Positions 3,917-46,574 of a stretch of 64,000 nucleotides of DNA are shown here, piece after piece. The position numbers and the translations under genes were made by a program. Source of the DNA: Basidiobolus meristosporus CBS 931.73 (Eukaryota > Fungi > Basidiobolomycota); contig MCFE01000206.1 of NCBI GenBank assembly GCA_002104905.1, forward strand, positions 1 to 64,000, written 5' to 3'. The notes below the pieces were generated by a model. The model did no database searches, had not been told where the DNA came from, and saw only the letters and a list, made by a program, of their open reading frames with translations. How positions within the stretch are numbered: position 1 is the stretch's first letter; each line of letters starts with the position of its first letter.

Positions 3917-6900
3917 CCCTATGAAAATAATTTGGTCCCATGGGTGGATCCAATCTGGATCATCCGTCAAGATCCCATTCAGAGACTGTCATAATAACAG
4001 CAGCTTAGAATTAGTGACCCTCTTGATGATCTTATAACAAGATCATGATGGTGTTTTGCAAATTTTACAGCCAAATAAAGGGATAAAACTTGACAAATTT
4101 TGATTGGTGCTGTGACAATATTTGCATGGTATTGTTGCAGTCTTTCAGCAATCTATTACTATTTTGAGTGGATCCAGCTGGCCAGGACTTCCAATTGCCG
4201 TATATGGCAAGAAACTTGACGGTATTTTGATGGCCTCAGAGCAAGACTCTGATGGCTTTTTCTTAGCAGTATGATTGCCTGCTGCTGGTTCTATATAATG
4301 CTACCGTACCAATTTACTAAATGGTAATTCCTTTTTCTACTTCCCCTTGTGCAATTCATATATTTCACTGTAAAATCACCTTTCTTCATTTGCTTACCCA
4401 CTACTACCTTGGGTATTCCACATACAGTTTGAATCAGAAAAACTATGGCCTCCTGCTTAATAACCTCTGCAAACACGCACACCAGCCGCAATTGACATAC
4501 TTCTCTCACCTCAGCTTTATGGCTTTTTAGTTTGATACTTGCAAAGTTGCCATATATCTTGTACTGCTGGTAGCATATACATCTTGCAAACATATGCTTG
4601 GTTGTTGCCACTTCTGCCATGAATACCTCCTGAATATTGACAAAGAACTTCTTGGTATTTAGCCAATATATTCCTTCTCCCTGCTGGATTCTTGTCCCCC
4701 TTATAGGTACGCTCTGGCTTTTGTTTGTGTGAGCTCCATATTGACTGGTGTAGAAGTTGGCTTGTGACCACAAGAAATCTGGCATATCTTGGAGGAGTTT
4801 TCCTGATAAAAATTAGTTGCTTGTTGCACCCAACCCAACTTTGCATTACTTAACTGATTACCCACACATTGGGGCTGCTTAGCTTCTTAATGCCAAAGAC
4901 ATAGGAGTCTCCATGTGCACATTTGTCCTCAGTATTTTCCAACTCTTTTTTGGCTATCCTCCATGTGCCAACTCATCATATCCATGACAGACTTGAAGGT
5001 AATATTCTTGATGAGATTTGGATATGGTAGTACCTGCAACTTGACTTGTATTCCTATCTCCCCACACATCTGCTCCATAGGAAACTCCCAAAAGGTGAAG
5101 CAAGGCCCAATATTCTCCACACACTGTGCAAGATGGAATAGAGAATGGATACAGTAGCAGCAGAGATCTACACGTTCAGCTTTATGTTTGTAGTATAGCT
5201 GCTCAAATCCCATCACAAACTCCTCACACAACAGCTGTAGATGCATCAAGTGTTGCAATTTAAGAAGCAATTTGGATATAAGGAACTTATCAAGAAATAG
5301 TGATAATAGTTGAACTGTTGTTTGTTGATAAAGAAGCTCAGTATTTATACCTTTGTAGAAGTAATACAGCTGCAACACTAAGTAGGGAGGGTTTCACAAT
5401 ATTTAGGAGCATTCTGTAACAGTTTCAGGGTTAGTACATAATGTTTGGTAATAGTGCTAATTAGATCCTGACTATAGGGGAATAATCATAAGATCATATA
5501 TCTGGAGAAAGTGGCAAAGTTAAGGCAGTAAATGAGTCCTACAGTGACTAGGACTAGCCTAGAATTGTTAAGTAAATTTTTAGCTGCTGAATTATACCAA
5601 ATAGCCCAATATTTCAACATCAAGTTGGCATTGGTGATCCGCTTCTAGATAAAAATTCCTACAATGTCTACATATGACTCCCAATGCTCCCAATGTACTC
5701 TTGGTAGGAATGGCTTCAGAACACCACTTGAATAAATACATATCCAGCTCATCCAGTCTTTGCATTTGTATTGTTGCATATGCGTATGAGTATTGATTGG
5801 AGCCTGTGTGAAGTACTTAGGGTAGCAGATACTCTGTAATATCTTGCCAAATTTTTTCAAATTTCTCCGGTATCTCAAAGGGCTAATTTAGCTGGGAATG
5901 CCCCATGTACAACTTGGTCATCAGTATAGGGATATTGTTGAAAAGCAAATGCATTGCTCCCAGTGGAAAGCTTTTGCTCCAACAGATTCCCTCTATCTTA
6001 AGTATTTCCGGTTTCCAATTGATTCCATATTCCTGCCAATGGCTTATAGGTTGCCAACTTTGCTGCAATTGCATGCTTACTTCTGTATGTTCTCTCTGTG
6101 GAAAGATGATGTTCTTAGTGTTGGTGTTTGGGTAATAATAATGTGTGTGTGTTATGGGGTAAATCCCCTGGATCTCACACATTTGACAGCAATACCATCC
6201 ATTGTGCCCGGAAAAACCTGCTATCTTGCCAATGGCTGGGGTATCTCCAATGCAGATAATAATATGCACTTTTACATGACTGCCATCTACCATTATCCCA
6301 CTGGAAAGCATACAAAATTCATTCAGCAATGGATAGAGATAGCTATCCAGGTTGGACAATGATTTAGGCCCAGATACCAGTGTGACTACCATCAGATTAT
6401 TGCTCCGATACTGTAAGATGGGCAGCAGATTCAGATCAATGAGAATCAGTGGCCAGCAGGATTTGCTGGTAGAGTAATTGTTTAATGAGTATCAATCAAG
6501 TGCCAAAGCAAAGGCATGGTCATACATACATAAAAACCTGCTATCTTGCTAATGGCTGGGGTATCTCCAATGCAGATAATAATATGCGCTCTTACAAGAC
6601 AGCCATTTAATGTTATCCTGCTGGTAAGCATAAAAATTTATCCAGTAATGGTTAAAGCTAGCTTTCTAGGCTTGACTGTGATATAGGCCCAGATACTAGT
6701 GAGTCTACCCTCAGATTATTGCTCTGATACTGTAAGATAGGTGGCAGACTCAGGTTGATGAAAATGAGTAGCCAGCAGGATTGGCTGGTAGAGTACTTGT
6801 TGATTGAGAATCCATCAAGTGCCAAGGCAAGGGCATGGTCATACATACCTTCAAAGTAGCCCTTGCATCTTAGCTGTTTGTAATGTCTGCCATCAAATAT

Positions 6901-9579
6901 ATCGGATATGTTTGTGCTTAATTGATACTGAGTGCGGTACTGTATAGCTTTGCAATATTTGTCGGACTGCATCAGCTTCTTCAGATCGGATATGACTGGA
7001 ATATATCCGGAGTGTGAACAATGTTTTCCCTCAATGGTGGTAGATTTCTGACAATTTGGACACGTTGCAATGGTAGCATTTTTGGATGTGAATCCCATGC
7101 AACTGTTAACACATGCTGGAATCAGGACAGTTGCTGGATCATATGTTGCCAGCTGCATGACAGTTGTCCACTTGAGCCATGTAGATGGTAAGTTCCATCC
7201 TGGTGTGATCTTAGCAAGAAGTTGTAATAAATCCTTAAAGCCCCCATTACTGATATTAGTAGAAATGAGCCACTTCTCTAGCCACAACATCACATCATTC
7301 ACCAGTAGATGGATTACTGGGCTCACTTGGCTCCATTAAGTATCCTTGACATTTGTCTCAACAGGTGTTGTCTCATTGCATAAAGGGATTTGACTGGGCT
7401 CATATGTGGTACTGTTGTTAGGGGAGATAGGCTCAAAATCCATCAGTGAACCTTCTTTGTCAGGGCTATCACTCTGCATGCCATATTCAGAAGGCTGAGG
7501 TGAGCCTAAAGGCATCACAAACTCACCTGGCTCAGTTTGCACAAGGTGACAAAGATGGCCAGGCACCAATATAGAAGTATCAATTGGCCGGCGAGATAAT
7601 GTTGGTACAGTAGTGACCAATGAATGGTCAAATATGACTTGGGTGGCAAAACACCGGCTGTGATCCTTGTAATACTTCCTATGCTGTCTGCGTGCTTCAT
7701 GGCTGAGAGGCTTGCCACAATAGCCACATGGTCCTTTTTCTCTTCTCTTATGGCGTTGAGTCAAAGTAGTCTTGTCCATGGGGCAAACAGTTTGACCTTC
7801 AACAACGTAACGCTATTATATCACTTTTTGGTCAATACTCATGTGAACTTAAGACAGTCTTGTATTTGAGACATTGCACCTACATGAATGTAATATTCAA
7901 TGATGACCTGCCATAGTAAGCATTATGAATAAAGTTGTGGCACCACATACACACATATATGTAACACTATTTCACCTTTGGTTTGACTCACTTCCATATA
8001 TTTGCTGCCAAAAAATAAAGCAAAGTCATCTGGTTCTCAACCAAGCTCCACCAATGACAGCCACAGAAAAATGGTTGGACAACAGCTAGCTTTGCCATTC
8101 AGTGCAACAAGCAGGGCTACATCCAAAATAGGCACTGTGGACAGTGTGCCCCTTGAAGGTAACAATACAGACTCCTCAGGCTCTCTGTCAAGTAGGCAAT
8201 TGAGAACCTCTGCGGAGCCACAAGCTGACTGTTATGCTCAGGCAGATCAGAATGTAGCAAATGCAGTACCCTCAGTTGAAGATTAGCAGATGGCCATGAT
8301 AACATCACCTCCACCCATATTAGCACATATGTTGTCAGCTCATACCAAAGTATTAATGAAGCAATTAGGTGCAGTGGCTGATGGGATAGATGCAATAGCC
8401 CAGAGAAATCATTACATAGTCCAGAAACAGGATGAGGGAATAATATGTATTATGGGCCAGCATTGGTATGCTAAGAAAGCAAGGGATAAGCAGGCCAAAA
8501 CAGATGCACTGGAGCAGAATTTTTCCAGGAGAAAACATAGTTCTTCACAAGAAGCAACCAGACAAAGTACCAGTGGAAGAACTGGCAGTGATAAAGGAGA
8601 ATGTAAAGGGAAAAATGTCTCCCCAAGCCTGAGACAGGGAGGCATGCAAAAGAAACTGCAGTTCTTGCCAATTAACTCTGCATGCCCAGAACAGACGGCA
8701 AGCCAGGCACAAATGGAATCCCATCATAGCCAAAAAGAATTACCAACAAGAAAACAGCTGTTGTCACAAGAGTTGGAAGTGCAGCCAGTTGAGCTACACT
8801 CCAGCAAGGTTGATGAGTTTGCTGAAAAAGGCAATTTGTCTACCACAGCCTCCATTGTTGACAGAGTTGACCTTCAGTGGAGTTTTGGAACATTAATAGG
8901 CATACCAAGAGGTTGCTGCACTTCTTCAAGAGCAGTGCTCAAGAAAATGCACTGGAATATTGCAAGGATTTATTGCAAAGACTAGCAGATGAGGAGCTAG
9001 ACCTTGCAGTGCCAGCTGAAGACCATGACGTGTGGGAACCAGTGAATGAACAGTGGCATAAAGCCAATGGGTTCCCACCAAAGTTGTGGAACCAGAGCGT
9101 TACAGCAGAAATACTTATTGAGTGGTGGATTTTAATGGAGTTACTTGTTGAGTGTGGGGTTTGGCTTAATGTTAGTGTAGGGTATAGAGACTTGTATAGG
9201 TCAATACAACTGGCAATTGAAGTGCAACTGAAGTCTCAACGGAAATAAATCAATTTGTACGCATGAAAAGTAAGAGAAACAGTTGAGTCAGGAAGTAAGG
9301 AGTGTGAAAAAGAGACAATAGCCAATCAATTCACACAAATGTAGGAGGCAATAGAGTGTCTGGGATCCAAAAGTGAGCAAATTGGCAGGGAACTAATCAA
9401 AAGCCACTTATACATTGTTGTGATGAAAAATTTTGACAAAGTTTTTTGTGAAACCTGGGGTGCAATTATTTTTCAACGGTCTCTGTACGGAGTCCTGAGA
9501 AGATCAGTACCTCTCAGTCATGGGACATTAACTTTATGACAGCCATTTGATGGGATCATCTCAATAATTTTTCATAGGG
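3917..9579. mobile_element. Delimited CACTA-superfamily element with CCCTA termini (5663 bp, degenerate)
   Basis: Left end CCCTATGAAAATAATT at 3917, right end AATAATTTTTCATAGGG at 9579, 3-bp TSD AAG on both sides. The minus-strand transposase remnants (about 4900-7850) contain DIFDG, SGPKSLSNLDSYLYPLL, GHNGWYCCQMC, FPLGAMHL and FWEFPMEQMCG. A divergent ORF2 remnant lies on plus at about 8000-9248. Confidence 0.9.
5251..5619. mobile_element. Solo LTR (369 bp) inserted in the CACTA transposase
   Basis: Starts TGTTG and ends CAACA, flanked by the exact 5-bp TSD TCAAG (5246-5250, 5620-5624). The transposase sequence is continuous once it is removed (compare the paralog near 18.3 kb). Confidence 0.85.
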
Positions 9580-20132: not shown

Positions 20133-23100
20133 TGTTTTAAGAATTTGTAATTCCACCTAAGAATTCACATAACTTAGTCACTTAAATCAATACCCTGGAA
20201 CCCTAATGAATACAGACCAGATTCCCTGTCAGCATTTACTTGGAATATTTTCACCAAAATACCAGGTACCCAGAACATGAGAATCCTCAACTTTGTCCAA
20301 ACCGCCCCAAACTTTACATACATGTTCTTGGAACCTTTCTTAATCTATTCTATGTATTTGTAATGCCAAGACCATGAAAGAGTATAAATACTACTTTTAC
20401 ATTCAATATATCACTAAGTGAAAACCACATAATCTACTTGTCCTCCAAATCACTTCCAATATCTCCAAGACTCTTATCACATGTTATCAGCCCCAAGCTG
20501 TCACTCTTTGCAATGTCTACTACTGCAACTATTGGAATTTTTCCCTCTGCTGAAAAGTTGAATGGATCTAACTACCAAGCGTGGATGGTGAAGATGATGA
20601 TGCTGCTGCAAGAAAGAGGCCTTTCAGACATTGTCATGGGAGATGAATGCCCTCCTCAAAATAAGGGAGAGGAAGCCCTAAAGTACCGGAAGAAAGAACA
20701 AAGTGCCTTTAACTGCATTTGCCTTAATGTTAAAGATAAATTGCTAATTCAATGCTCAAGAGCAAAAATGGCAAAGAATGCCTGGAAGGCATTAGAAGAC
20801 ACCTACCAGTCATGTTCAGCTGCTAAGATAATGTATCTGAGACAAAAATTCTTTACTACAAAGATGCTGCCAGGTGAAGACATGAAATATCTAATTAACA
20901 GAATTACCCTGCTGGTAGATGAGATGGAATCTGTGGGTGTACCAACTACTGATGAGGATGTGATAGCTAACATCCTGATTAGCCTGACAGACAGGTTTCA
21001 GGGCCTTGTATCAGCCCTAAAGTCCAGAACTGAAGATTTGACCTTATATTACATATATCAAAGGCTCCTGGAAGAAGAATTAAGAAAATCTAGGGCCAAA
21101 AAAATGAAGAAAAAGTGCTCTAATAAGCAATGATAACCAGCAAAGGAGGTACCTAAGACCCTACAAAGGCAACAGCATCCTGTTTTGTAACTACTGCAAC
21201 AGGAAAGGACACACATCAGACTGGTGCTTGAAAAAGAGAGATAATCAGCTAAAGAAGCGTGAATATGAAATGCTGCAACAACTGCAGATATACTATTCAT
21301 ATCTGCACTAAATGTGACCACCAACAAGGATTCTCAGATGTGGTATATTGTCTCTGGAGCATCTCAACACTATGCACACCAAAAAGAACTTTTTACCCAA
21401 TATCAAGAAATTCCAATTAAGAAGGTGTTCATGGGTGACAATTGTACACTTGATGCAGTGGAAGAAGGAACTATCCAATAAACCTAAGAAGCAGTGAAGG
21501 AGGCCATAAAAGGACCTTTAAAGAAGTACTCTATGTACTATAAATAGCCAAGACCCTACTATCAGTAAGCAAGGCCACTGCAGAAGGACTCAGTTTCAGC
21601 TTTGACAATTCTGGATGCAAGATCACTGATCAAAATGGTGCCCATATTGCTTTGGGTATCAGAGATCAGAACCTATACAAATTGACTAATATTCCATCAT
21701 ATTTGGAAGCCAATATAAGTAACTTAAATGATGAAACACCAATGCATGGTATGGATACAGACCAAGTGCAGAACATCTAAGAATACTTAGGTTTACAGCA
21801 TATGCCAAGAAACTACCGGGAAATCAGTCACATTTGAGCCAGAAAGTGTAAAATGCTTATTTTTGGGCCACTGCAATGAGAGTAAAGCATAAAGACTCTA
21901 CAATACCAAAGTAAAGTAGCTAATCTAGTCCAGGGATGTGTTGTTTATGAGAATTCAAAATTTTCACAAAACATGAAATCAGTTGATGATAAATATCTGA
22001 TCACAAGTCCACCAATTGTCAGGATTGAATCAGAGCAAAACAATGAAAATTTTTTCATTCCAGAGGACTCTACAACCATGGTTCAGCCAGAATCAGTGCC
22101 CAGGAATATCCCAGAAGTGATCATTTTAGTAGCAAATGCCTGGAGATCCAACTGGATAAGAAATAGCCCAAGTTACTATATCATTGAGGGTAAAAACTTA
22201 GCCTATGCCTATTCAGTTCATTTTGATGAGCCCCAGACTGTAAAAGAGGCCCTAAATAGCCCTCAGACAGAGTTTTGGAGATCTGCAGTGACTGAGGAGT
22301 ATCAGGCCCTAATGGAAAATCTAACTTGAGACTTAGTCAAATTACCAATCAACCAAAAATCAATTGGATGCAGATGGGTCTTCAAGACAAAATACAAGGC
22401 TGATGGTACTATTGAAAGATACAAAGCAAGACTTGTGGCCAAAGAATACTCCCAAAGAAAAGGGCTTGACTATACTGAGACCTTTGCACCAGTAGCCAAG
22501 TTTAATTCCATCAGATAAATATTGGCTATTACAGCCAAATAAATGTTTTTATTTATCATATGGATGTAAAAATTGCATTTTTGTATGGTGAACTTGATGA
22601 GGACATGTATATGGACCAGCCTGATAGGTTTGGTGATCAAGATAACCCCATTTGGTCTGCAAGCTTAAAAAGTCACTATATGGTCTCAAACAATCACCAA
22701 GAGCCTGGAATTGCAAGATAGATTCTTATTTGGAATCTTTGAGTTTCAAAAGGAGTAATGCTGACTATAGTAAAAACTATAAGCCAGATAGAGCAAATCC
22801 AGCTCTATTAGCTCTATATGTGGATGATCTTATTATAGCTGCCAATAACACAGAAACAGTGGAAGAGACTAAATCCAGCCTATCTAAGGAGTTCAAGATG
22901 TCTGATCTAAGAGAACTCAGTTACTACTTACGGATTAAATTCTTCATGGACAGAAGTACCCAGACTATTACCCTAAGCCAATCCATGTATATTCAAGATA
23001 TACTAAAGAAGTACCAAATGCAAGACTGTAAACCAGCAGCTACCCCAATGGAGAGAAACCTTAACTTGGTCAAAACTCAACCAAATCAAGAGATCTTGAT

Positions 23101-24152
23101 GCCATCTGAAAGCCCTGACTTTCCTTATCAATCTATGGTTGGCAGTCTTATGTATATCATGCTTGGAACACGTCCAGATATCTCATATTCATTGGGAGTT
23201 GTCAGCCAGCAAAATCAGAACCGTGGATCTATTCATATTGCAGCAGTTAAGCAGATTTATAGATACCTAAAAGGAGCTGCTGATATCTGCTTAAGATACA
23301 CTTATAAGTATTTGGAGCAGGATCTTGTGGGATACTCTGATGCTGATTGAGGACAAAATTTGGAAGACAGAAGATCCACCTCAGGATACACCTTTCTTTA
23401 CTGTGAAGGAGCAATTTCATGAAATTCAAGAAAGCAACCAACTGTAGCACTTTCTACCACAGAGGCAGAGTACATGGCAGCCTGTGAAGCAACAAAAGAA
23501 GCAATATGGTTACAAAAGCTTTTTACAGATTTAGGCCTATGTCAAAAAATGCCTATTTATTTCAAGATAATCAAGGATATATACAATTAGGTAGAAATCC
23601 AACTTTTCATGCTAGAACCAAGCACATAAATATTAGACTTCTTTTCATACGTGAAGCTATAGAGAATAACTCAGTTAGCTTAGTTTACAGTTCTACGGAT
23701 GAAATGATTGCAGACATATTTACCAAACCGTTAGCTAGAGACAAGTTTGAATATCTTAGGTCAAAATTAGGAATAGTCAGTATGAACATTTAGCTGAGTG
23801 GGAGTGTTGTAAAAATTTGTAATTCCACCTAAGTATTCACCTAACTTAGTCACTTAGATTGTTACCCTCAGATCCTAGAGAATACTGACCAAGTTCCTTG
23901 TTGGGATTTACTTAGAATATTTTCACCAAAATACCAAGTACCCAGAACATGAAAATTCTCAAAGTTGTCCAAACAACCCCAATCTTTGCACACATGTTCT
24001 TGGGACCTTCCTTAATCTATTCTATGTGTTTTTAATGCCAAGACCAGTTAAAAGTATAAATACTACTTTACATTCAATAATTCATTAAGTGAAAACCACA
24101 TAATCAACTTGTCCTCCCAATCACTTCCAATATCTCCAAGACTCTTACAACA
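20133..24152 (+). mobile_element. Ty1/Copia retrotransposon with both LTRs (20133-20481, 23805-24152), pseudogenised, integrase core deleted
   Basis: TG...CA LTRs of about 349 bp; purine tract GAGTGGGAG before the 3' LTR; gag LNGSNYQAW; RT LYGLKQSPRAW and LYVDDLII; RNase H ARTKHINIR...MIADIFTKPL. Many stops and frameshifts. About 650 bp present at 25.4-26.05 kb is missing near 21740. Confidence 0.92.
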
Positions 24153-27100
24153 GGTTATGAGCCCCAAGCTGTGAGTCTCTGCAATGTCTACTACTGCTAT
24201 TACTGGAATTTTTCCCTCTGCTGAAAAGTGGATGGCTCTAACTACCAAGTGTGGAAGGTGAAGATGAAGATGCTGCTACATGAAAGAGGCCTTTGGGATA
24301 TTGTCATGGGAGAAGAATGCCCACCTAAAAACATGGGAGAGAAAGCCTTGAAGTACCAGAAGAAAGAAAAAGTGCTTTTAACTGCATTTGCCTTAATGTT
24401 AAAGATAAATTGCTAATTCAATGCTCAAGAGCAAAACAGCAAAGAATGCCTGGAAGGCATTAGAAAACACCTACCAGTCATTTGCAGCTGCTAAGAAAAT
24501 GTATCTGAGACAAAAATTCTTTACTACAAAGATGCTGCCAGGAGAAGAAATGAAAAATCTAATTAAAAGAATTACCCTGCTGGTAGATGAGATGGAATCT
24601 GTGGGTGTACCAACTATTGATGAAGATGTGATAGTACCATCCTGAATAGCCTGACAGACAAGTCTTAGGGCCTTGTATCAGCCCTAGAGTCCAGAACTGA
24701 AGGTTTGACCTTAAATTATGTGTATGGAAGGCTCCTGGATGAAGAATTAAGAAAATCAAGCGCAAATAAGAAGGAAGAAGAAAATGCTTTAATAAGCAAT
24801 GATAACCAACATAGGAGGTACCCAAAACCCTGCAAAGGCAACAGCAACCGCTTTTGTAACTACTGCAAAAGGAAAGGACACACATCAGACCAGTGTCTCA
24901 TAAAGAAAGATAATCAGCAATAGAAGCCTGAATATGGAAATGCTGCAACAACTGAAGATAGACTATTCATATATGCACTAAGTACAACCACAAACAAGGA
25001 TTCTCAGACATAGTGTATTGACTCTAGAGCATCTCAACACGTTACACACCAAAAAGAACTTTTTACCCAATATCAAGAAATTCCAATTAAGGTGCTCATG
25101 GGTGACAATAGAACACTTTATGCAGTGGGAGAAGGAGCTATCCAAGTGAACCTAAGAAGCAGTGAAGGAGCCATACACTAACTTTCAAAGATGTACTCCA
25201 TGTACCAGAAATAGCCAAGAACCTACTAACTGTAAGCAAGGACCCTGCAGAAGGACTCAGTTTCAGCTTTGACAATTCTGGATGCAGGATTGCTGATCAA
25301 AATTGTGCCCATGTTGCTTTGGGTATCAGAGATCAGAATCTATACAAGCTACCTTATATTCTATCATATTTGGAAGCCAATATAAGTAACTTAAAGGAAG
25401 AAACACTAATGCTTTGGCACAGGAGATTTGGGCACATCAATTTTGATTATTTGCACAAAATAATCAGAGATCAGCTAATTTCTGGAGTAAAATTTATCCC
25501 CCAGCTAATTTGGAGCACTGTGAAGTCTGCATATATGGGAAAAAAGCCAGACAACTGTTCAAGAGCTCTGAGTTAATCAAAGTAAGAAAAAATTAGATCT
25601 AATTCACTCAGATCTGTATGGACCTATGCAAAATTTATCCTTGCGCAGGATGAAGTATTCAATCACTTTTATTGATAATTATACAAGATACATATGGGTC
25701 TACTTCTTGGAGAGAATGGAAGAAGCTCTGTCTAAGATCAGGGAGTTTAAAGCCATGGTGGAGAGAGAAATGGGTGAAAAAATCAAGAAAATACACTCTG
25801 ACAATGGTGGAGAATATACTTCAAGACTCTTCATCCACTTCTGCAAAATTCATGTGATAAAGTAAGAGACTACTGTACCATACTCCCCACCGCAAAATGG
25901 AGTAGCAGAACGTGCTAACAGATCAATAATTGATATTGCAAGATCTATAATCCATGATCAAAAATTATCCTATGATTTTTGGGCGGAATCAGTTGCCACT
26001 GCTGTATATCTTAAAAATAGGAGTTATAACAGTATACTTTGTGACTCTACTCCATTTGAAACATGGTATGGATAAAGACCAAGTGCAGAACATCTAAGAA
26101 TACTTGTGTATACAGCATATGCCAAGAAATTGCCTGGAAATCAGTCAAAATTTGAGCCAAAAAGTGTAAAATGCAGATTTTTGGGCTACTGCAATGAGCG
26201 TAAAGCATACAGACTCTACAATACCAATGCAAAGAAGCTAATCAAGTTCAGGGATGTGTTGTTTGATGAGAATTCAAAATTTTCACAAAAAATGACATCA
26301 GATGATGACAAAATCTGATCTCAAATTCACCAAATGTCAGGATTAAATCAGAGCAAAACAATGAAAGTTTTTTCACTCCAGAGGACTCTACAACTTTGGT
26401 TCTGTCAGAATCTGTGCCCAGGAATATCCCAGAAGTGATCATTCCAGTATCAAATGCCTGGAGATCCAATTGGACAAGAAATAGCCCAGATTACTATATC
26501 ATTGAGAGTACAAACTTAGCCTATGCCTATTCAGTCCATATTGATGAGCCCCAGACTGTAAAAGAGGCCCTAAATAGCCCTCAGACAAAGTTTTGGAGAT
26601 CTGCAATGACTGAGGAATATCAGGCCCTGATGGAAAATCAAACTTGGGACTTAGTCAAATTACCAATCAACCAAAAATCAATTGGATGCAGATGGGTCTT
26701 CAAGACAAAATACAAGGCTGATGGTACAATTGAAAGATACAATGCAAGACTTGTAGCCAAAGGATGTTCTCAAACTAAAGGACTTGACTATACTGAGACC
26801 TTTGCACCAGTAGCCAAGTTTAATTCTGTCAGATTAATATTAGCTATGGCAGCCAAATATAAGTTTTTTATTCATCAAATGGATGTAAAAGCTGCATTTT
26901 TGAATGGAGAACTTGATGAGGACATGTATATGAACCAGCCTGATGGGTTTGGTGTCCAAGATAACCCCCATTTGGTCTGCAAGCTTAAAAAGTCACTATA
27001 TGGTCTCAGATAATCACCAAGAACCTGTAATTGCAAGATAGATTCATATTTGGAATCTTTGAGTTTCAATAGGAATAATGCTGACTATAGTATATACTAT

Positions 27101-33928: not shown

Positions 33929-36343
33929 TTAAACTTCTTTGAGTAAATAATTCATAGTCTAGCGGTAAGCTAAATAGAATCTTGAGGTATATGAGCGGTT
34001 TAGGTGTAAACCGAATGTTTACAATATTTACAACAGTGAGAACCTGAGTTTAGTCCCAAAAATTGACCATGTATGATATCGTAATACCCAATTAGCTAGG
34101 AACCGCACATATTTTAGCTATAGCACAACCAAGTTCAAAGAGGAATCTCAAATCGGTTGACAGTATGCGCAAAACGAGCGTTGGTACTTCACACTTCACA
34201 GGAGGTCACTGAGAATGGGTGTAATCCCTGGGGCCTTTTGAAGACAAGGTGGATTGTTTGCTGTATCCTCAGTCACCAAGAAACAGCACAATATTCTCAT
34301 AAAGTAGGCCACCAGGTATAGATTCACGCTCAATTTTGGTGGATTATCTTTCATAAGGTAATCATGGATGGGAGATACAGGTATAATAACAATTAGGCAC
34401 GTATCCGATAATAACCTACAAAGCACACTATACAAAAGTGCAACTGCAGGGTCAGGTAGCAACAGGTAAATAGGAGCCGCCATTACAAGTACAATTGGTT
34501 CAAGAATTATAATTTAACGACAAAACGACTGCCAAGCCTGTGTTCCTCAGGACGAATAGCTATCCAAATCAACACCATTGGGATTCAATCGCTCGAGGTG
34601 CATTGAATCCCGAAATCCGCTGTAGGCTCCCAATTTGCAGGCAGAGCTCAAAGCGTAAATCGAATTCGTGAACCAGTCAGTGGGAAGGATGATAGGAATA
34701 GCAAAATATTGATTCAGTAAACTGGATTTTGTGTGTATCCGGCACGCCTTCAAATTGCTAAATAGAGCGTCGCCATCCATTAAAGGATGTCAAGGCGTGG
34801 TTATAATACCTGGGTCTTATGGAATCAATGAGCGATTGAGTCGACTCCTTGCTATACAACTGTATATGCACTTGGAAAGTGTAGCAGGCACTGGATATAG
34901 ACACTTCTCGCTTTTTGTCCCAAGCCCTGCATGTGTCCGCTCGCGAGTAGAAAGAGTGCGTTTTGCAAGTTGATCCGGATGATAAGCCATATGCCTGGTT
35001 TCCAGGATTCTCAGCCAGCCCCTAGAGCCTCACCGTTGAATGGAATCTTGCATAGACCAACTTGGTTAAGGTTTCAGATGAGTACGGCTATCCGCCTACA
35101 CCACAATGTATTTACATCACAATGTCCAACAGGTACGATGTAGCAGTTGTGTGTATTAAAATAGAAAACCCAATAGCAGTTGTATACAGAATTTGCTGGT
35201 TTGGACCGTCTACGGATTGGTATACTGAAACCAATGATCTTAAGTGGGAAGAGCGCCGTAAAGTTCCGTGGTGCTGCTTTGATTGAATAGGAATTATTAT
35301 TGTACAACGAGGCATGGCCTTGACATGATGAATTTCATCAGCAGGACGAAGTGCTTGATTGGCTATGATGGTCAAATCATCAAGCAACAACAACCGAAAA
35401 GAATGAATCTAAAATAGCCCAATTTCGATGCGCAATCGCTGCCCCGCTGGAGCAGCTCAGCACAGCACCACACCGCACTACATCCATGGGAAACCGCGTT
35501 TAGCCTTACTTGGAAGTGCGCTAGCTTACGATTATGGTTTGGGCACTGGGGCGGGCACTCCACCGCTCGGCACTCGTCATTTCCATATTTATTTTGCCAT
35601 GGTTACAGAAATGGGAGCTGAGTTTTGGTTTCCAAGAATCGAATGCTTTCAAAAGCGATTACATAGTGGAATGTGAAATACATGTTGATGGTTGACACCA
35701 TCCCCGCCCTATTTGGTACCCAGATGTCAGTTTGGTATTTCGGTATCAAAAAGTGCAATTTCTGTGATCAACATCAGTGATCATCTTAACCGAGCTACTA
35801 AGCCACTCCGACAAAATGCGATGTTTCAGATCCATCCACCGCTGCCAATCCATGTTTTCATTGGAGCCAAGTCCCCATAGGCTAGAGTAGCCTACGGGAT
35901 CGTGGGAAACAAGGTGCTAAGAAATACGGAAACCTCTGTGATGCTCGAAACGGCCCATCTCTGGAGCCTTGCTAGCGATGCGGGCTCAGAATATATCAAT
36001 CGAGTTTCATTTCTGCCATTCCCAAAATCAATGCCCATGCTCCCAAAATATGAACGATTAAGTGGATTGTATTGTAACTCGGAGCACTTTCTTCGGAAGT
36101 GATTGAAAACATTTCCTGTTGATTGGTCGATTCAAAATCAGGTACGACCCGAAGCGTATTCCATCTTTTCGCCTTTCATCAAATCCGATAATATTCGTCT
36201 CGAATGTTTCATGCAATAGGAAACAGGTGGATGGACAAGTACCACCATAGGATTAGGTTGGTTGTGGGCGTACTTTATTTAAGCCTATACTTTTCTTCTC
36301 CAAAAATCACAACTGAGTTTCATATTCATTTTTAACATCTATC

Positions 36344-37327
36344 ATGGTCAAAGTCGCTGTTCTTGGTGCTGCCGGTGGTATTGGTCAACCTCTCTCTCTT
36401 CTCCTTAAGCAAAACACCTTGATCTCCCACCTTGCTCTCTACGACTTGGTCAACGTTCCTGGGGTTGCTGCCGATCTCTCCCACATCAACACCCCCTCCA
36501 AGGTCACTGCTCACCTCGGTGCCGACAACCTCCAAGAGGCCCTCGCTGATGCCCATGTCGTTGTTATTCCCGCTGGTGTCCCCAGAAAGCCTGGCATGAC
36601 CCGTGACGATCTTTTCAAGATCAACGCTGGCATTGTCCGTGACTTGGCCACCGCCGCCTCCAAGTACTGCCCCAAGGCCTTCATGTTGATCATCTCCAAC
36701 CCCGTCAACTCCACTGTCCCCATTGTTGCCGAGGTCTTCAAGAAGGCTGGAGTCTACGACCCCAAGCGCTTGTTCGGTGTGTCCACTCTTGATGTTGTCC
36801 GTGCTTCTCGCTTCGTTTCCGAGGTCAACCCCGAGTTGAACCCTGTTGACACCCGAGTCACTGTTATTGGTGGACACTCTGGCACCACCATCATCCCACT
36901 CCTCTCCCAACTCAACCCCACTCAGAAGTTCACCCAAGAGCAAATTGAGGCCTTGACTCATCGTATCCAATTCGGTGGTGATGAGGTTGTTAAGGCCAAG
37001 GATGGAGCTGGCTCTGCTACCCTGAGTATGGCATTTGCCGGTGCTCGTTTCGCTATCAATATTCTTGAAGCCAGCGTCGGTGGAAAGACTGGTATTATTG
37101 AGCCAAGTTATGTTGACCTCTCTGCTTATGTTGAAGGTGGTAACACTGTCAAGGCCGAGACTCAAGATTGCGCCTACTTCGCCACCAATGTTGAGCTCGG
37201 TAAGGATGGTGTTGAGAAGATCTTCTCCATTGGTAAGCTTTCCGAATTTGAGCAAAAGCTTTTGGCTGAGGCCATCCCTCAACTTAAGGCTAATGTTGAG
37301 AGCGGTGTTAACTTCATCAACGCTTAA
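36344..37327 (+). CDS. MDH: Malate dehydrogenase, no mitochondrial presequence, no PTS1 (likely cytosolic), intronless, 327 aa
   Basis: [48 protein letters not shown] and GSATLSMA motifs; strongly biased high-expression codons; ends FINA. Confidence 0.97.
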
Positions 37328-37543
37328 ACTGCCCATCGACGCTTGTAACTTTCCAGTACATAGCCCCACCTCATCACTGCATTTATCGCATACCATATCA
37401 TCCCCCTAGTGCTAACCTCAATAAATATGGCTTATCTAATCAACCTTGGGAAATTTTTTCAAGCGTTCGCACGATTTTGAGATGGAATGGTATTTCGAAG
37501 TACCGAATGCCCGCTTTATTTAAATGTTGGGCCATACTGTATT

Positions 37544-37732
37544 TCATGTAAACAGACCGCCAACAATAGGTACATACTTCAAGAACTCAAATATTTTGGG
37601 CAACTTAATGCCAATCCCAGCTTCTATCTCTAATCCCGGGTCAGTTGCATTGTCGTCTATCTCCATTAATGTTGGTGAGCAGTAGATAGCGGCGATTAGC
37701 AGAAGTGTGAATAATACTTGAAAGTGTGACAT
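37544..37732 (-). CDS. 62-aa secreted prepropeptide: signal peptide + acidic pro-region + amphipathic cationic peptide (putative antimicrobial/cytolytic precursor)
   Basis: MSHFQVLFTLLLIAAIYC-SPTLMEIDDNATDPGLEIEA-GIGIKLPKIFEFLKYVPIVGGLFT*. TATAAAAAA starts 57 nt upstream (37781-37789) and AATAAA lies 24 nt after the stop (37515-37520). Confidence 0.75.
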   Translation of the reverse strand: MSHFQVLFTLLLIAAIYCSPTLMEIDDNATDPGLEIEAGIGIKLPKIFEFLKYVPIVGGLFT

Positions 37733-37780
37733 GGGCAACAATGGTGTAATGTTGCTCCATAAGATGGGCCATTGCATTGC

Positions 37781-37789
37781 TTTTTTATA
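37781..37789 (-). promoter_or_regulatory. TATA box of the prepropeptide gene
   Basis: TATAAAAAA on the minus strand upstream of the ATG at 37732. Confidence 0.6.
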
Positions 37790-38949: not shown

Positions 38950-39942
38950 ATGGTCAAAGTCGCTGTTCTGGGTGCTGCCGGTGGTATTGGTCAACCTCTC
39001 TCTCTTCTCCTTAAGCAAAACACCTTGATCTCCCACCTTGCTCTCTACGACTTGGTCAACGTTCCTGGGGTTGCTGCCGATCTCTCCCACATCAACACCC
39101 CCTCCAAGGTCACTGCTCACCTCGGTGCCGACAACCTCCAAGAGGCCCTCGCTGATGCCCATGTCGTTGTTATTCCCGCTGGTGTCCCCAGAAAGCCTGG
39201 CATGACCCGTGACGATCTTTTCAAGATCAACGCTGGCATTGTCCGTGACTTGGCCACCGCCGCCTCCAAGTACTGCCCCAAGGCCTTCATGTTGATCATC
39301 TCCAACCCCGTCAACTCCACTGTCCCCATTGTTGCCGAGGTCTTCAAGAAGGCTGGAGTCTACGACCCCAAGCGCTTGTTCGGTGTGTCCACTCTTGATG
39401 TTGTCCGTGCTTCTCGCTTCGTTTCCGAGGTCAACCCCGAGTTGAACCCTGTTGACACCCGAGTCACTGTTATTGGTGGACACTCTGGCACCACCATCAT
39501 CCCACTCCTCTCCCAACTCAACCCCACTCAGAAGTTCACCCAAGAGCAAATTGAGGCCTTGACTCATCGTATCCAATTCGGTGGTGATGAGGTTGTTAAG
39601 GCCAAGGATGGAGCTGGCTCTGCTACCCTGAGTATGGCATATGCAGGTGCAAGATTTGCAATCAATATTCTTGAAGCCAGCGTCAATGGAAAGACTGGTA
39701 TTATTGAGCCAAGTTATGTTGACCTATCTGCTGATGAGGAAGGAGGAGGCTTAATTAAGAAGCAAGCCGGATGTGATTTCTTTGCTGCTAACGTGGAGCT
39801 CTATTCTCGGGGTATTAAACATATACTGCCCATCGGAACTCTTTCTGATTATGAGCAGAAGCTTTTAGTAGAGGCTTCTTCGGAATTGAAATCCAATATT
39901 AAAAAAGGTGCAGACTTCGTGAACACTGACTCAAAGATGTAG
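38950..39942 (+). CDS. MDH: Malate dehydrogenase paralog with C-terminal PTS1-like SKM (likely peroxisomal), intronless, 330 aa
   Basis: Same motifs as the upstream copy; divergent last third ending VNTDSKM*; TATAAATAAAA about 98 nt upstream. Confidence 0.95.
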
Positions 39943-41049
39943 AACTGGTCTTCTCCACGAATGGCCGAATTTATACTCGTAACATACCTTATCAACAGTA
40001 TCTAGTTTTTCATCACATATTTCAGCACTGTATATTAAACACAACTACGTGTTGTTTTATAAAATTGCAACTTCGCCTCTCAACTAGACATGATTGCTTT
40101 AAAATTGAGTGTGATAGGATTGATTGCTTATCAAGGCATATGGTTCTACAACCTGTTAATACACACCTGCTACTAATATGCAAATGCCCAAATTTCAAGT
40201 ATATTGACATCATATCGTGTGATGTGTTCAGTAAGTCAATATACCCATCAATGAATTGGATTGTGGAAGCTGATTTGCCTGGATTGGCATTGAATCGTTC
40301 AAACCTGTTTTAGATCCATCCACTAACTAGGCTAATTTTGTATTGGTTTCATCACTAAATCATGTTTCAAATTCCCTTGGGTAGATTGACTGTTTCCGGT
40401 AGCCTCTCTACCCCGCTCTCATTTACACATCCCTTGTTGATGTGGAATATTGAATGGGAGGCAGAGGTCCAGAAGAACCATTGTTTAATGCGCATGCATG
40501 TATCGAAAAGATGCCGAGGAAAAATCAAATCAAACCGGAACGTCCTCCTCATGGATTCTACTAAAGTGTGGATCCGCATTTGTAGGATTTCTGCAGCCCG
40601 CAATTGCCGAGTTGAATCAAAATGTAAGATCGACGGATTACTTAAAGGGGGAGGAGTATGTTTCTGCGAACAGATGAAATGGGAGTTAATGAGCGGTGGT
40701 TGGAGGCTGATTTGACGGATCGCTGCACATCCATCATCGTGGAGTAATCTTCAATACGATAAGACGAATGATAAAATTCTAGTGAAACCGGATTTAACTA
40801 AATACGCGATTCCCCGTTTACAACAACCATGAAATGAGGGTTCGGGTTATAGGTACTAGTGTATTTCAGTCGTAAGCCTTTGAAGGTGTTTGAACTGAAT
40901 GTTGGAAAGGGACCATCCATGATTCCCCCATCCACTAGCGCTTTATTTTTGCAGAGGTGGGTACTGGTATCACAACACCTACAAGATCCGAAGTTGGTGC
41001 CACCAAAAAAGGACGATGATGCTGTTGGAATGAGTAGAGTACTAAAAAG

Positions 41050-42159
41050 ATCATACAAGTCGAAAATGTGTTCTCATTCTGGTGGGTACACTTGGTATCC
41101 AAGTGTGAAGTGGAGACACGAATATACACGTTGATGTTCAGGGTGCAACTGGTGCTGGTGGTGGCAGCGATGGTAACAGTGGAGGTGGAGGTGGAGCGTG
41201 CAACAAACTAGAAAGAAACATACAGAAAAATAGGCATTCAAGTGCGAAAATACACAATCAAACTGAGGTATGGCCACAGCAAATAGGGTGAGGGAGTAGG
41301 ATTGGCACTTGAGCGTGTCAACCTACAACATCTCAATCATAAACAATGCACAAATGAAGGCTGCGGCTGAAGTAGCTTATGGCCCTCTGTGGACTGGCTC
41401 GGTACCATGCTGACTTTGCCGCTCATCCCATATCCTTGTCATCCAGGGTGTGGATGTCCACTGACAAATGGGGTGTCAAAAACTTGGATGGGTAAATAAA
41501 GGTGGTAAAGTGGAGGATGGATGTGGGTGAGGGTGAGGGTGAGGGCAAGGGTAGGTATAGCACTGATGGGGGCAGAGTGGGGAATGGGGGTCTGAGAAAG
41601 AGAACTGGTTAAAGAATGGGAGTGGGAGTGGGAGTGGTAGTGGGAATGGATACGAAAATGGTGGACAAGAGCTGAGGTAGATATAACCTATGACAGTCAA
41701 TTGAAAGATAGGCTAGTACATCAATGAATTCATGAATGAATGTGCGAGCAGGTGTGTGTGTGTGTGGAGGTGTGAAAGTGGGCGAGTGCTGGGTTCGTTA
41801 TCCGAGCTGCCGGTTACTTGGCCAGCTGGTGGCTTGCCCCGCTTCCTTGCCCTACATTAGTCATCGGCGTGGTTAGAATCCAATCCCACGATGGTAGCCT
41901 AGCTTGGAGTATCTCGGGGAGCGTCTGTGTGTATGCCCCGACCTCGCTTGGGGCACATCCGACCCAGAGATGCTGGCTGCTATGGCTGTGGCAATGGCAT
42001 TGACCCTGACGGCAGTCCTGGTGGTGGCTCGATGACTCAACAGAAGCTTGACTCCATCCTTTATGTATGAAGTAAGCACCCCACGAAGCATAGCCAGCAG
42101 ATGGACGATGGCCACCAGAGCGGATACTAGAAAAACCATTGAGATCTCCATGCTGTTTA
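41050..42159 (-). repeat. Left arm (1110 bp) of a long inverted duplication
   Basis: Reverse complement of 45032-46137. I found about four substitutions plus a (GGGAGT) unit indel and a (GT) unit indel. No TSD and no transposase in the 2.87-kb spacer. Confidence 0.95.
41873..42151 (-). CDS. 92-aa hypothetical protein with hydrophobic N-terminus (copy A)
   Basis: AAACAGCATGG start context; TATAAATACC at 42241-42250 (minus). The single SNP versus copy B is synonymous in this frame (TCA/TCG). Splicing cannot be excluded. Confidence 0.5.
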   Translation of the reverse strand: MEISMVFLVSALVAIVHLLAMLRGVLTSYIKDGVKLLLSHRATTRTAVRVNAIATAIAASISGSDVPQARSGHTHRRSPRYSKLGYHRGIGF

Positions 42160-43844
42160 TTCCAAGTTAGATGGTAAGGTAGTAGCAAAAGGTGCTGTTG
42201 TTGCTGCTTTCGCTGGCAAGAAAATCGATCCGGTGCGGGGGGTATTTATAGCTCAAGGTTACAATCAAGGTTGTTGTTCACCGATTTGCGATGGCGTATT
42301 TTACTGGTCTCAATTGGAGCACTGTCTTCTGAGTATCTGGCTATATTCAAGGTCAAGACAAACTGGTTTGGAGTGGGTGCTGATTAATAACTCGGGAGTT
42401 GACAACATACATGTCTAGATTAAAGGCTCACAACCATAGATAGCTTGAGGGCTGAGGGTAGCTTGTGCTTAATGAGGTCGAGATAGGATTGATTTGCCTC
42501 GAAAGGACAGATTCACGGTTGTACAACGTGTTTAGAAAATGAAAAGAATCTGGGCTGGTTTTAATTTTAGTGCAGCAAGACTAAAATTCCAGTATGCGCT
42601 TAATCCGCAATGTTCAGCATGACAATGCATCCGATTTAACCATAACCTTCAGCAGCATGGTAGCATTTTCATTCGAAAGCATCATATGGACGCTTGTACA
42701 ATTTAATAAAGTTAAGATGCAAATATCAATGCAGCCTGGTTCCAGTTTTTGCAGGACAAAGGCGACAAATATGTTCTATTATATCCAAGCACATACGGGT
42801 GTCTCCTGCCTCCACAGTGGACTTCCGATATCCCATACGATATGCCTTGGTATACCGGTGGACCGGCAAGCCCCGTTGACAAGTTTCAAGATCAATGAAA
42901 GCCCTACTCCCCATGGATACTGTTACTTGATGCAAATCAATCAGCCCAGGAACGTGTAGATGCTTCAATATTGCCACAAGTGCATATTAAACAGCTGCCC
43001 TAGCTGATTACAGATCTAAGGTGGCTCTATGACATCATTGGATGCGTGGTCGGTGTTAGGGTAATTGCGGCCTCCAGCTGCTTGACCACAGCCCATGATT
43101 GTCTCATGGAGTGGAGAGGCGCTGCGAGAGTCTCTGGTCCCATGACAAATTCATTGGGACCCACTGCCATATATCGCAACAGCTCAGTGAGTAAAATTTG
43201 AGACATGTTGTTGCCTGTCTGCTGGTTGGACGGTTAGATGGGGAAAACTCGCAACCCCTGCTGATATGTTTCACCCTCGCAAGGCGAAGGGTCGTGGTGG
43301 GTCCGGAAATGGGCCTAACCACTGCAGCGCCTGATTTGTGTGGATGAGCATCACATCTTCGCCTACATCTATAGGTGGTAGTGTCAGCACCCATGGATCT
43401 TCTAATGAGGAGGAGATTGGTATCAGATGGGAATTTATTCAGAAATGAGAATGTTTCAGATGCATAGCGATGGCACTGCGATGAATCCGAGCAGGAGACA
43501 GTGGCTTTCAATATCACTATACTGGTGAGGAAAGACTCTGACATCTGCTCCTTGGCTAATATGCTGGGCGGGTAGTGCACAAATCCCAACTGATTGAATA
43601 CCATTTGTTTCATAAATGTAGTTTTGGCTCTTTGCTCCCATCCAACCCATTCCTAGGCCACACCATGCAACACAAATTTAGTTATACAAGTTCTCTCAAT
43701 GGGAAGCATGCAAAAGAAGAAGTGCAATACGACTCTTCACAAAGGCTGTGGGTGACACTGCATCAATATAAATACCTCCACTTGTTACTAGTGGGAACTG
43801 GAGTGACTCCAAAAACTTATCCTAAAGAATCGATGGAGTTCAAC

Positions 43845-44066
43845 ATGTCAACAACCATTGTGGCTTTGTTCCTCGTGATCCACCTGCTCCCTTTGGTTCA
43901 AATAGCATTCCCTTCGGTTAAACAGATAGCAATCCATGTCAGAAACTCCACAAACTGTAATTGGGCCGAGGATACTTCCTGCTCCAAGGATACATGCTGG
44001 AGGTTTAATGTCCCATGCACTAATCACTGGTGGCTGGTGTTGGAGTTAAAACTGAGGTCTGAATAA
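43845..44066 (+). CDS. 73-aa putative small secreted protein with 4 Cys, in the palindrome spacer
   Basis: MSTTIVALFLVIHLLPLVQIA signal-like start, then ...NCNWAEDTSCSKDTCWRFNVPC...; CAACATG context; TATAAATACC at 43767-43776. Confidence 0.45.
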   Translation: MSTTIVALFLVIHLLPLVQIAFPSVKQIAIHVRNSTNCNWAEDTSCSKDTCWRFNVPCTNHWWLVLELKLRSE

Positions 44067-45031
44067 TCCAATTGTAGCGAGCCTCGACAATCCCATTGCT
44101 CGCAAGACAGATACGAAAGTGGCACTGTTAAATCCCACTTTTTGGCTCTTCCATCATCTTCCCAATGTATAAACAACTCAAAAGACGTTTGTAAACGATC
44201 CTGTAACCAGCACAAGTATGCCTAGCTTTTGATTTATCCATTTGATAACTTGACTGTATTCATCAATGTGAACCCTAATTGAAATAAATCTGAAGTGCCC
44301 ATGGCAACCTAACTTAATCCCAACATCTTCGATTTCCCTATGATCATGCTAGTATTCCGTGTTATTAAATATCCCCGTGCTACGGCCCGCCCCCAATATG
44401 TATATGCTAACTTCACTATAGGTAGCGCCTTGGCATACCCACAGCCCTGCGATTTGTAAGGTTAATTCCTGAATTGAATATGAACCTGTCAATAATTATT
44501 CTAATTGCGGTTGTCTAGGAATTGTGCAACACCTTTGCAACCGATAAAACTCCATTCATTACGACATAATCTCTCCTAGCAGATTAATATCATGAGGGGT
44601 CCCGTTCAGCCCCTCTTGGCTTAGTGCATAAACGGAAACCCTGCTGAACATGTAACGTATAGAATTTCGGATTTCACATGCCCGCATACTTTCTGATGGT
44701 TTGATGTAGGTTAGGCTTGAATCTCTGCCAATTTGGTGTTTAGAAAACTTCCTATCGTCATCCCTTTGAGCAACTTATTGCTAATTAGAACAAGGACACG
44801 TAAGTTATATCTGAGCATTGTCTTCCAAAAGGTTGACTCTGATGTTCGAATATGGATCGCCACTTTGACCTTCTTTTGGCATTAATGCATGATCAGTGCG
44901 TTGAGGCGCTCGTACCCCTTAATCTCCATTGCACATCACTTCAAGTCAACCACCCAAAGTATAAATACCCTCACAGCGTATTGATTCATTAGTCAGTGAA
45001 AACAGTACACCTTTGCTATTATCACTTTGAG

Positions 45032-46137
45032 TAAACAGCATGGAGATCTCAATGGTTTTTCTAGTATCCGCTCTGGTGGCCATCGTCCATCTGCTGGCTA
45101 TGCTTCGTGGGGTGCTTACTTCGTACATAAAGGATGGAGTCAAGCTTCTGTTGAGTCATCGAGCCACCACCAGGACTGCCGTCAGGGTCAATGCCATTGC
45201 CACAGCCATAGCAGCCAGCATCTCTGGGTCGGATGTGCCCCAAGCGAGGTCGGGGCATACACACAGACGCTCCCCGAGATACTCCAAGCTAGGCTACCAT
45301 CGTGGGATTGGATTCTAACCACGCCGATGACTAATGTAGGGCAAGGAAGCGGGGCAAGCCACCAGCTGGCCAAGTAACCGGCAGCTCGGATAACGAACCC
45401 AGCACTCGCCCACTTTCACACCTCCACACACACACACACACCTGCTCGCACATTCATTCATGAATTCATTGATGTACTAGCCTATCTTTCAATTGACTGT
45501 CATAGGTTATATCTACCTCAGCTCTTGTCCACCATTTTCGTATCCATTCCCACTACCACTCCCACTCCCATTCTTTAACCAGTTCTCTTTCTCAGACCCC
45601 CATTCCCCACTCTGCCCCCATCAGTGCTATACCTACCCTTACCCTCACCCTCACCCTCACCCACATCCATCCTCCACTTTACCACCTTTATTTACCCATC
45701 CAAGTTTTTGACACCCCATTTGTCAGTGGACATCCACACCCTGGATGACAAGGATATGGGATGAGCGGCAAAGTCAGCATGGTACCGAGCCAGTCCACAG
45801 AGGGCCATAAGCTACTTCAGCCGCAGCCTTCATTTGTGCATTGTTTATGATTGAGATGTTGTAGGTTGACACGCTCAAGTGCCAATCCTACTCCCTCACC
45901 CTATTTGCTGTGGCCATACCTCAGTTTGATTGTGTATTTTCGCACTTGAATGCCTATTTTTCTGTATGTTTCTTTCTAGTTTGTTGCACGCTCCACCTCC
46001 ACCTCCACTATTACCATCGCTGCCACCACCAGCACTAGTTGCACCCTGAACATCAACGTGTATATTCGTGTCTCCACTTCACACTTGGATACCAAGTGTA
46101 CCCACCAGAATGAGAACACATTTTCGACTTGTATGAT
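45032..46137 (+). repeat. Right arm (1106 bp) of the long inverted duplication
   Basis: See the left arm; it contains (CA)n, (CCCACT)n and (CCCTCA)n microsatellites and the hairpin ACACTTGG-ATA-CCAAGTGT near its outer end. Confidence 0.95.
45040..45318 (+). CDS. 92-aa hypothetical protein with hydrophobic N-terminus (copy B, identical protein to copy A)
   Basis: TATAAATACC at 44960-44969; same start context as copy A. Confidence 0.5.
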   Translation: MEISMVFLVSALVAIVHLLAMLRGVLTSYIKDGVKLLLSHRATTRTAVRVNAIATAIAASISGSDVPQARSGHTHRRSPRYSKLGYHRGIGF

Positions 46138-46574
46138 TTCTATTACACTGCTCACTCGAGCAAAATTATCGTTTCTCTCTAGTGGCGTCGATTCCAAGCT
46201 ACGCAGATACTGTTGCATCATGGACAGATGACGACACCCTATTATTCACCACTGGCCATGTTGTTCTCCCATTGTTTCTGTTTAAGATACATTGTATGGA
46301 GTGAACCACCATATCCCGGTGCAAAATAAACCAAAATCCAAATTGAAACACAGAACCTGTTCTTAGTATACACAGACGTGTGAAAAATCAATCCTCCAAG
46401 TGAAAACATCAGAGATCTGGTGAATTGCCATCATAAACTATCATCTCACTCCTGTAGCCGTGGATTATCAGTGCCATCGTGATACATACAATATAGACGA
46501 TGTTTAAATAGCATCGGATGACGCATCTTTTTGCCATTAAACATTGGTCAAGTGGTGAACTCCGATTCTACAGC

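Follow-up and report, generated by a model that had tools for sequence, protein, structure and literature searches.

Does the 1.6-kb spacer between two tandem malate dehydrogenase (MDH) genes of the fungus Basidiobolus meristosporus contain a gene of its own, and, if so, is its product related to the antimicrobial peptides of animal venom and skin? The window analysed here covers the initial 64 kb of NCBI contig MCFE01000206.1 (assembly GCA_002104905.1). Both MDH genes lie on its plus strand, MDH1 at 36344-37327 and MDH2, which has a peroxisomal-type -SKM end and forms the upper boundary of the spacer, at 38950-39942. The small open reading frame (ORF) in question lies on the minus strand at 37544-37732, convergent (tail-to-tail) with MDH1, and consists of 62 codons plus TGA in a single exon of 189 nt (ATG at 37732, TGA at 37546-37544). 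An earlier note on this DNA described it as a gene with a TATA box, an ATG, a stop codon and AATAAA, and each of these elements is indeed present on the minus strand. The TATAAA element (37784-37789, at -57 from the conserved ATG) would have a promoter function, and AATAAA (37515-37520, at +24 past the stop) is likewise a putative functional element.

Judged on its own genome, the small ORF has no features that are clearly beyond chance. The window contains 128 ATG-initiated ORFs of at least 62 amino acids, compared to about 77 in simulated sequence. A three-part layout of hydrophobic N-terminus, acidic middle and weakly cationic C-terminus is expected 0.006 times per window, corresponding to about 11 occurrences genome-wide (1,723 windows), an expectation calculated with layout thresholds that were set post hoc, after the ORF was known. 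Suitably placed TATAAA and AATAAA elements occur together at 1 of 154 ORFs versus 0.47 expected, while a TATA-like hexamer is found within 200 nt upstream of the start in 7 of the 18 annotated genes and a poly(A) hexamer within 200 nt past the stop in 9 of the 18. The full codon score of the ORF is -0.07 bit/codon (chance ORFs, -0.20 ± 0.10; real genes, 0.09 ± 0.13), and the score based on synonymous choices only is -0.19, a value equalled or exceeded by 82% of chance ORFs, with 2% of real 62-codon chunks scoring at or below it. The GC content of 41% is that of the spacer, with local genes at 46-52%. There is no annotation at the ORF, though the B. meristosporus annotation includes a 73-aa gene elsewhere, and the only sequencing run found (3.7 kb compared) represents the MDH coding contigs of a close relative, with 94-96% identity, and leaves the spacer uncovered. 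ORF length, codon usage, GC content and homology to annotated proteins were thus misleading until an unannotated syntenic copy turned up.

This copy is found in B. ranarum. Around the full-length MDH of B. ranarum (P0002, contig L002), no homologue of the ORF is present; to conclude from this locus that the small ORF is not conserved is misleading, because the MDH on L002 is of the MDH2 type, with the same -SKM end as MDH2, and the MDH1-type 3' ends are located on separate short contigs. Searching with the MDH1-specific C-terminal part yielded two such contigs, L005 and L006, both short and carrying MDH1-type fragments. On L005, the MDH1-type 3' end has 78% nucleotide identity to MDH1, and an ATG-initiated ORF of 67 codons, L005:628-831(-), lies on the strand opposite to MDH, 270 nt past the MDH stop. 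In both species, the small ORF is therefore found downstream of an MDH1-type 3' end, in convergent orientation. No such ORF exists at the other MDH1-type locus of B. ranarum, on L006. In tblastn searches of L005, the peptide aligned over its full length with 64.7 bits, whereas among 300 shuffled peptides 239 gave any match, the best one scoring 23.5 bits. The two ORFs are 53% identical (alignment A1) and share the MSH start and the stop column; the B. ranarum ORF also ends in TGA, is followed by AATAAA at +62 and, like its counterpart, is unannotated.

The differences between the two ORFs are those of a translated frame under constraint. Three indels of 1, 2 and 2 codons separate the orthologs, all of them in frame, and pN across the pair is 0.259 versus a saturated pS of 0.746, with 25/9/35 differences at the first, second and third codon positions; for the adjacent MDH tail of the same species pair, pS is 0.60 and pN is 0.11. 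The similarity forms an island, with 62% matched columns within the ORF (z = 4.6 versus shuffles), and flanks at shuffle level (z = 0.8 to 1.6). Within this otherwise unalignable DNA, the ATG of B. ranarum is preceded by a TATA element (TATATATA) at -56/-54. The frame-conservation and selection figures, which rest on two sequences (B. meristosporus and B. ranarum), show purifying selection on the small-ORF frame. Because the frame is conserved in B. ranarum, with the same start and stop, the ORF is more than chance, and the hidden gene that the earlier note had proposed is borne out by its syntenic counterpart, the excess of synonymous change, the in-frame indels and the unalignable flanks. 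As far as comparison of two genomes can tell, the small ORF is very probably a real, conserved and so far unannotated protein-coding gene.

The ortholog also defines the gene model. An in-frame upstream ATG at 37777 would extend the product by 15 codons (37733-37777, minus strand) to 77 amino acids. This version was rejected, as the extension has no counterpart in B. ranarum, where the ORF starts at the MSH methionine without an upstream in-frame ATG and the similarity begins at MSH; the TATA element is only 12 nt ahead of ATG 37777, and the extension thus lies outside the protein. A candidate 41-nt intron (GTATGT...CAG, 37537-37577, minus strand) was rejected as well: B. ranarum lacks GTATGT at this place, and the 10 residues that would be lost with the intron remain conserved, in frame, as far as the common stop. 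Since the ortholog has a matching start, a matching stop and in-frame C-terminal residues, the 62-aa model starting at ATG 37732 is right and the intron is refuted. The unspliced 62-aa product assumed previously is in line with this result, and the exclusion of the GTATGT...TACAG intron, for which RNA-seq had been suggested, was achieved by ortholog comparison.

The MDH genes that frame the spacer have a history of their own. MDH1 and MDH2 are 98% identical from exactly the ATG to positions 37140 and 39746, respectively (797 bp), a block that looks like a gene-conversion tract, and past this tract identity drops to 45% over the C-terminal 61-64 residues. The tail of MDH1 is similar to that of the paralogue P0004 (64%) and ends in -INA, while the C-terminus of MDH2, like those of B. 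ranarum P0002 and B. meristosporus P0005, is -DSKM, a PTS1-like peroxisomal tripeptide preceded by aspartate. Considering the conversion tract together with the distinct C-terminal tails, the two genes seem to encode isoforms, one of cytosolic and one of peroxisomal type, whose catalytic part has been homogenised. The NCBI model of MDH2 (38950-39743) ends at 265 amino acids, very close to where the conversion tract stops; since the frame continues to 330 amino acids and aligns to its end with B. ranarum P0002, the model looks truncated. Some 510-600 nt ahead of MDH1, an 88-bp block (35746-35832) shares 81% identity with L002:1824-1911, which precedes the MDH2-type gene of B. ranarum; we found no other conserved non-coding piece around these MDH genes, and the block may represent a promoter element or an exon of the 5' UTR. 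Tandem MDH arrays recur in the B. meristosporus genome, as indicated by L003:10001-12672 (MCFE01000412.1), where one annotated 314-aa MDH 'gene' covers two tandem MDH copies (local positions 1-978 and 1686-2669) and a third MDH lies divergently upstream. B. ranarum has tandem pairs too, judging by L006 (JASJQH010012101.1), in which an MDH1-type 3' end at 77-376 is followed, after about 945 bp, by the start of the next MDH at about 1312-1370. Elsewhere in the window, a palindrome spans 41013-46172, with arms that are 97.7% identical over at least 990 bp (41013-42000 versus 46172-45191). Transposons are abundant in the left half of the window: at 20438-27013 and 6661-7326, there are ORFs of copia-type retrotransposons (gag, reverse transcriptase) as well as a tnp2-type transposase match that, at 22.3 bits, is weak and below the cut-off of 28.6.

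The 62-aa product falls into three regions, and the composition given for them in the earlier note holds: a hydrophobic N-terminus of 18 residues, a middle part of 20 residues with six acidic and no basic ones, and a C-terminal part of 24 residues with a net charge of +2. The N-terminus (residues 1-18, 37679-37732, minus strand) resembles a signal peptide. Its Kyte-Doolittle mean is 2.3 in both species, its pN is 0.21, and the pattern MSH.Q...IA..Y.SP is conserved; a hydrophobic core of 14-15 residues (14 in B. meristosporus) is followed in both species by a conserved Y-[C/S] (Y-C here) and then S-P, with I/V at -3 and C/S at -1, and the n-region lacks a basic residue. On the -3/-1 rule, a signal-peptidase site is predicted after residue 18, and the first 18-19 residues would constitute a cleavable signal peptide, which makes it fairly likely that the product enters the secretory pathway. 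The acidic middle (residues 19-38, 37619-37678, minus strand) is the least conserved segment (pN 0.39), and two of the three in-frame indels fall within it or at its end. Its net charge is -6 here and -4 in B. ranarum, and an N-A-T glycosylation sequon is not kept in the ortholog. The layout of putative signal, acidic middle and C-terminal module is retained in both species, but the lack of basic residues in the middle is not, as the B. ranarum segment contains R and K.

The C-terminal module (residues 39-62, 37547-37618, minus strand) is hydrophobic, weakly cationic and conserved. It has the lowest pN of the three regions (0.18), with 15 of 24 residues invariant, among them the motifs KLP, F.FLKY and P.VG.LF and with two prolines and two lysines conserved. 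The net charge of +2 becomes +1 in B. ranarum, and the peptide ends in LFT here and in LFS there, without a basic C-terminal cluster. Because it is the most constrained part, the C-module is likely the functional part of the product. The 24-mer had been described as amphipathic, which does not apply to its full length: its helical hydrophobic moment of 0.17 equals that of shuffled order (mean 0.175), the moment in B. ranarum (0.115) is likewise at shuffle level, and the sole amphipathic stretch comprises 11 residues (moment 0.57, p ~0.07). AlphaFold models are of low confidence (pLDDT 54-61), below what a fold search would need, and contain a helix at residues 3-17, a disordered middle (pLDDT <50) and short helices at about 44-52 and 56-59. 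The [E/D]-A / G junction between middle part and module is conserved in both species. No recognised pro-peptide cleavage site was found: the 62-aa product contains no K/R pair, in agreement with the reported lack of a dibasic (Kex2) site, and X-Pro/X-Ala accounts for 3 of 10 dipeptides in the pro-region and for 2 of 11 in B. ranarum, so that the earlier count of only some such dipeptides also stands. A reading of the C-terminus as a GPI signal was considered and rejected, as sequence-specific conservation and charged residues do not fit it.

Searches for relatives beyond the genus returned nothing above background. Within B. meristosporus, tblastn of the peptide revealed no paralogue in the 64-kb window, the paralogous MDH loci L003 and L004 hold no paralogous ORF, and a homologous-protein search showed no similarity to any annotated protein of the genome. 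The gene is present as a single copy and not as an amplified family, and the tail of its product, being hydrophobic with little charge, is not rich in Gly, Tyr, Arg or Trp. A collection of 15 billion proteins has no exact entry for the 62-aa, the 77-aa or the B. ranarum ORF, and phmmer against 1.84 billion protein representatives gave no match. In hmmscan against Pfam-A at E up to 10, neither the 77-mer, nor the 24-mer, nor either ortholog matched a family, Melittin included; PDB searches gave only chance-level matches for the 62-mer and the two-sequence profile (E 0.09 or worse), none of them to melittin or a maximin, and zero matches for the 24-mer. No relative appeared in metagenomes, searched with the single sequence and the two-sequence alignment, or in prokaryote genomes, searched with the single sequence. 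Neighbours in the ESM Atlas were at noise level (recognition 1971 and 2007, scores 0.75-0.82), Rfam reported nothing on the spacer, and we found no description of such a peptide in Basidiobolus in the literature. The blank protein-database searches can be attributed to the B. ranarum ORF being unannotated too. By sequence, the gene belongs to no known peptide family; with its ortholog it makes up a family of so far two members, restricted to the genus and to be placed among the small secreted or membrane micro-proteins of fungi.

Three other explanations have to be weighed against that of a gene with a secretory product. If there were no gene, the frame would be a matter of chance and the similarity would stem either from a non-coding element that is conserved or from a gene encoded opposite, where plus-strand ORFs exist at 37524-37685 and at L005:617-781. 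In favour of such a scenario are the abundance of chance ORFs of this size, the missing annotation in both genomes, the lack of spacer coverage in the only sequencing run found, and the poor synonymous codon use. In a six-frame test of the aligned DNA, the antisense frame that shares third positions with the sense frame came second best, with a pN/pS of 0.38 and 48% identity. However, the sense frame has the highest identity and the lowest pN/pS (0.35) of the six and is the only one that is stop-free in both species; within the alignment, the antisense frame is interrupted by 2 and 1 internal stops, and in B. ranarum it lacks an ATG start. Saturated third positions combined with preserved second positions differ from the way in which a non-coding element evolves, and the indels, start and stop all respect the sense frame. 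We consider the absence of a gene very unlikely.

A real gene may also encode a small membrane-embedded protein, such as a subunit or regulator of a membrane complex, whose N-terminus stays uncleaved as an anchor and whose C-module is inserted into the membrane or lies on its surface. Two hydrophobic segments split by a charged linker, an n-region without positive charge and a junction without a protease motif would suit such a protein, and a C-module conserved in its actual sequence would be in keeping with a binding partner. The core of 14-15 residues is nevertheless short for a membrane span, which is a distinction between signal peptides and anchors, and the conserved small residues and S-P that follow it, the conserved K, K and two prolines of the C-module, and the lack of any relative among known small membrane subunits in protein and Pfam searches speak against it, making the membrane protein an unlikely solution. 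The remaining alternative, a true relative of melittin, maximins or bombinins, whether inherited from a common ancestor or acquired from an amphibian or insect host, draws on the by-eye likeness of the [E/D]-A / G-I-G junction and of PIVG. The B. ranarum ortholog preserves neither motif: it has PLVG in place of PIVG, and G-I-G is altered to G-F-G-I-G or offset. With no match in Pfam, PDB or the 1.84 billion proteins, a pro-region that is no dipeptide ladder, no dibasic sites and a conservation pattern that is the reverse of that in frog skin precursors, kinship with animal peptides has a negligible probability, and a relation to melittin, maximins and temporins, with which the earlier note had drawn a comparison by eye, is not upheld by any of these searches or by the two-sequence profile.

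The best explanation of the locus as a whole, and one that we regard as likely, is an intron-less gene kept, together with its position, in both species and encoding a putative secretory product with a functional C-module. The putative signal peptide (residues 1-18/19) would be cleaved as the product enters the secretory pathway, leaving 44-48 residues composed of an acidic, fast-evolving and probably disordered spacer and a hydrophobic, weakly cationic module of 24-26 residues. Changes in the spacer would be tolerated provided that its acidity stays, and, until the hydrophobic module is set free, the acidic part may keep it soluble or inactive. That it is released at the [E/D]-A / G junction, which is conserved, is a guess, as there is no known protease motif at this site; liberation of a free 24-mer is conceivable though on the doubtful side, and an unprocessed secreted form of 44 residues or a small membrane protein fits about equally well. 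A released peptide with membrane activity is improbable. It is also improbable that the gene stands for a Basidiobolus-specific family of linear ribosomal peptides, membrane-active or signalling, 24-26 residues long, hinged by Pro and Gly and freed from an acidic pro-piece without Kex2 sites or a dipeptide ladder. If this were true, a frog-gut fungus would use a peptide against gut microbes or as a cell-to-cell signal, with a layout convergent with those of animal venom and skin peptides.

Considering the gene itself, a conserved micro-gene appears to have been overlooked by the annotation of two early-diverging fungal genomes, and it provides a defined candidate, with a product of 62 or 67 amino acids and a C-terminal module of 24-26 residues under clear constraint. 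To our knowledge, fungi of zygomycete grade have yielded very few linear bioactive peptides of ribosomal origin. The habitat of Basidiobolus is the amphibian gut, and a secreted peptide would be of ecological interest for this reason.

Among known systems, prepromelittin offers the same order of signal, acidic pro-part and hydrophobic peptide that starts with G-I-G after ...E-A, and its size of about 70 amino acids is similar. The small-ORF product differs from it in having no match to the Pfam Melittin family, neither a basic C-terminal cluster nor full-length amphipathicity in its peptide, and a pro-region with few X-Pro/X-Ala dipeptides (3 of 10; 2 of 11 in B. ranarum), for which reason stepwise removal by a dipeptidase cannot work. 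The likeness to the maximin/bombinin precursors of Bombina and to ranid temporin precursors is confined to short motifs, the G-I-G start and the tetrapeptide PIVG; compared to these precursors, the product has no dibasic sites and no detectable similarity. Resemblance to melittin and maximins is thus at most one of convergent layout, and a venom-like reading of the peptide is not supported by the sequence comparisons.

The distribution of constraint points in another direction. Precursors of frog skin peptides combine conserved signal and pro parts with a hypervariable mature part, whereas in the small-ORF product the order is reversed, with a conserved mature-like part and a variable pro-like part. 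By analogy, this pattern is closer to that of hormone or pheromone precursors or of a structural micro-protein. Fungal precursors of comparable design are the yeast alpha-factor precursor and Candida Ece1, the source of candidalysin. The small-ORF product differs from both in lacking Lys-Arg (Kex2) sites, repeats and any sequence relative, but it resembles them in its small size and in the succession of signal-like N-terminus, spacer and short, conserved module at the C-terminus, and its [E/D]-A junction recalls the Ste13-type dipeptides of alpha-factor.
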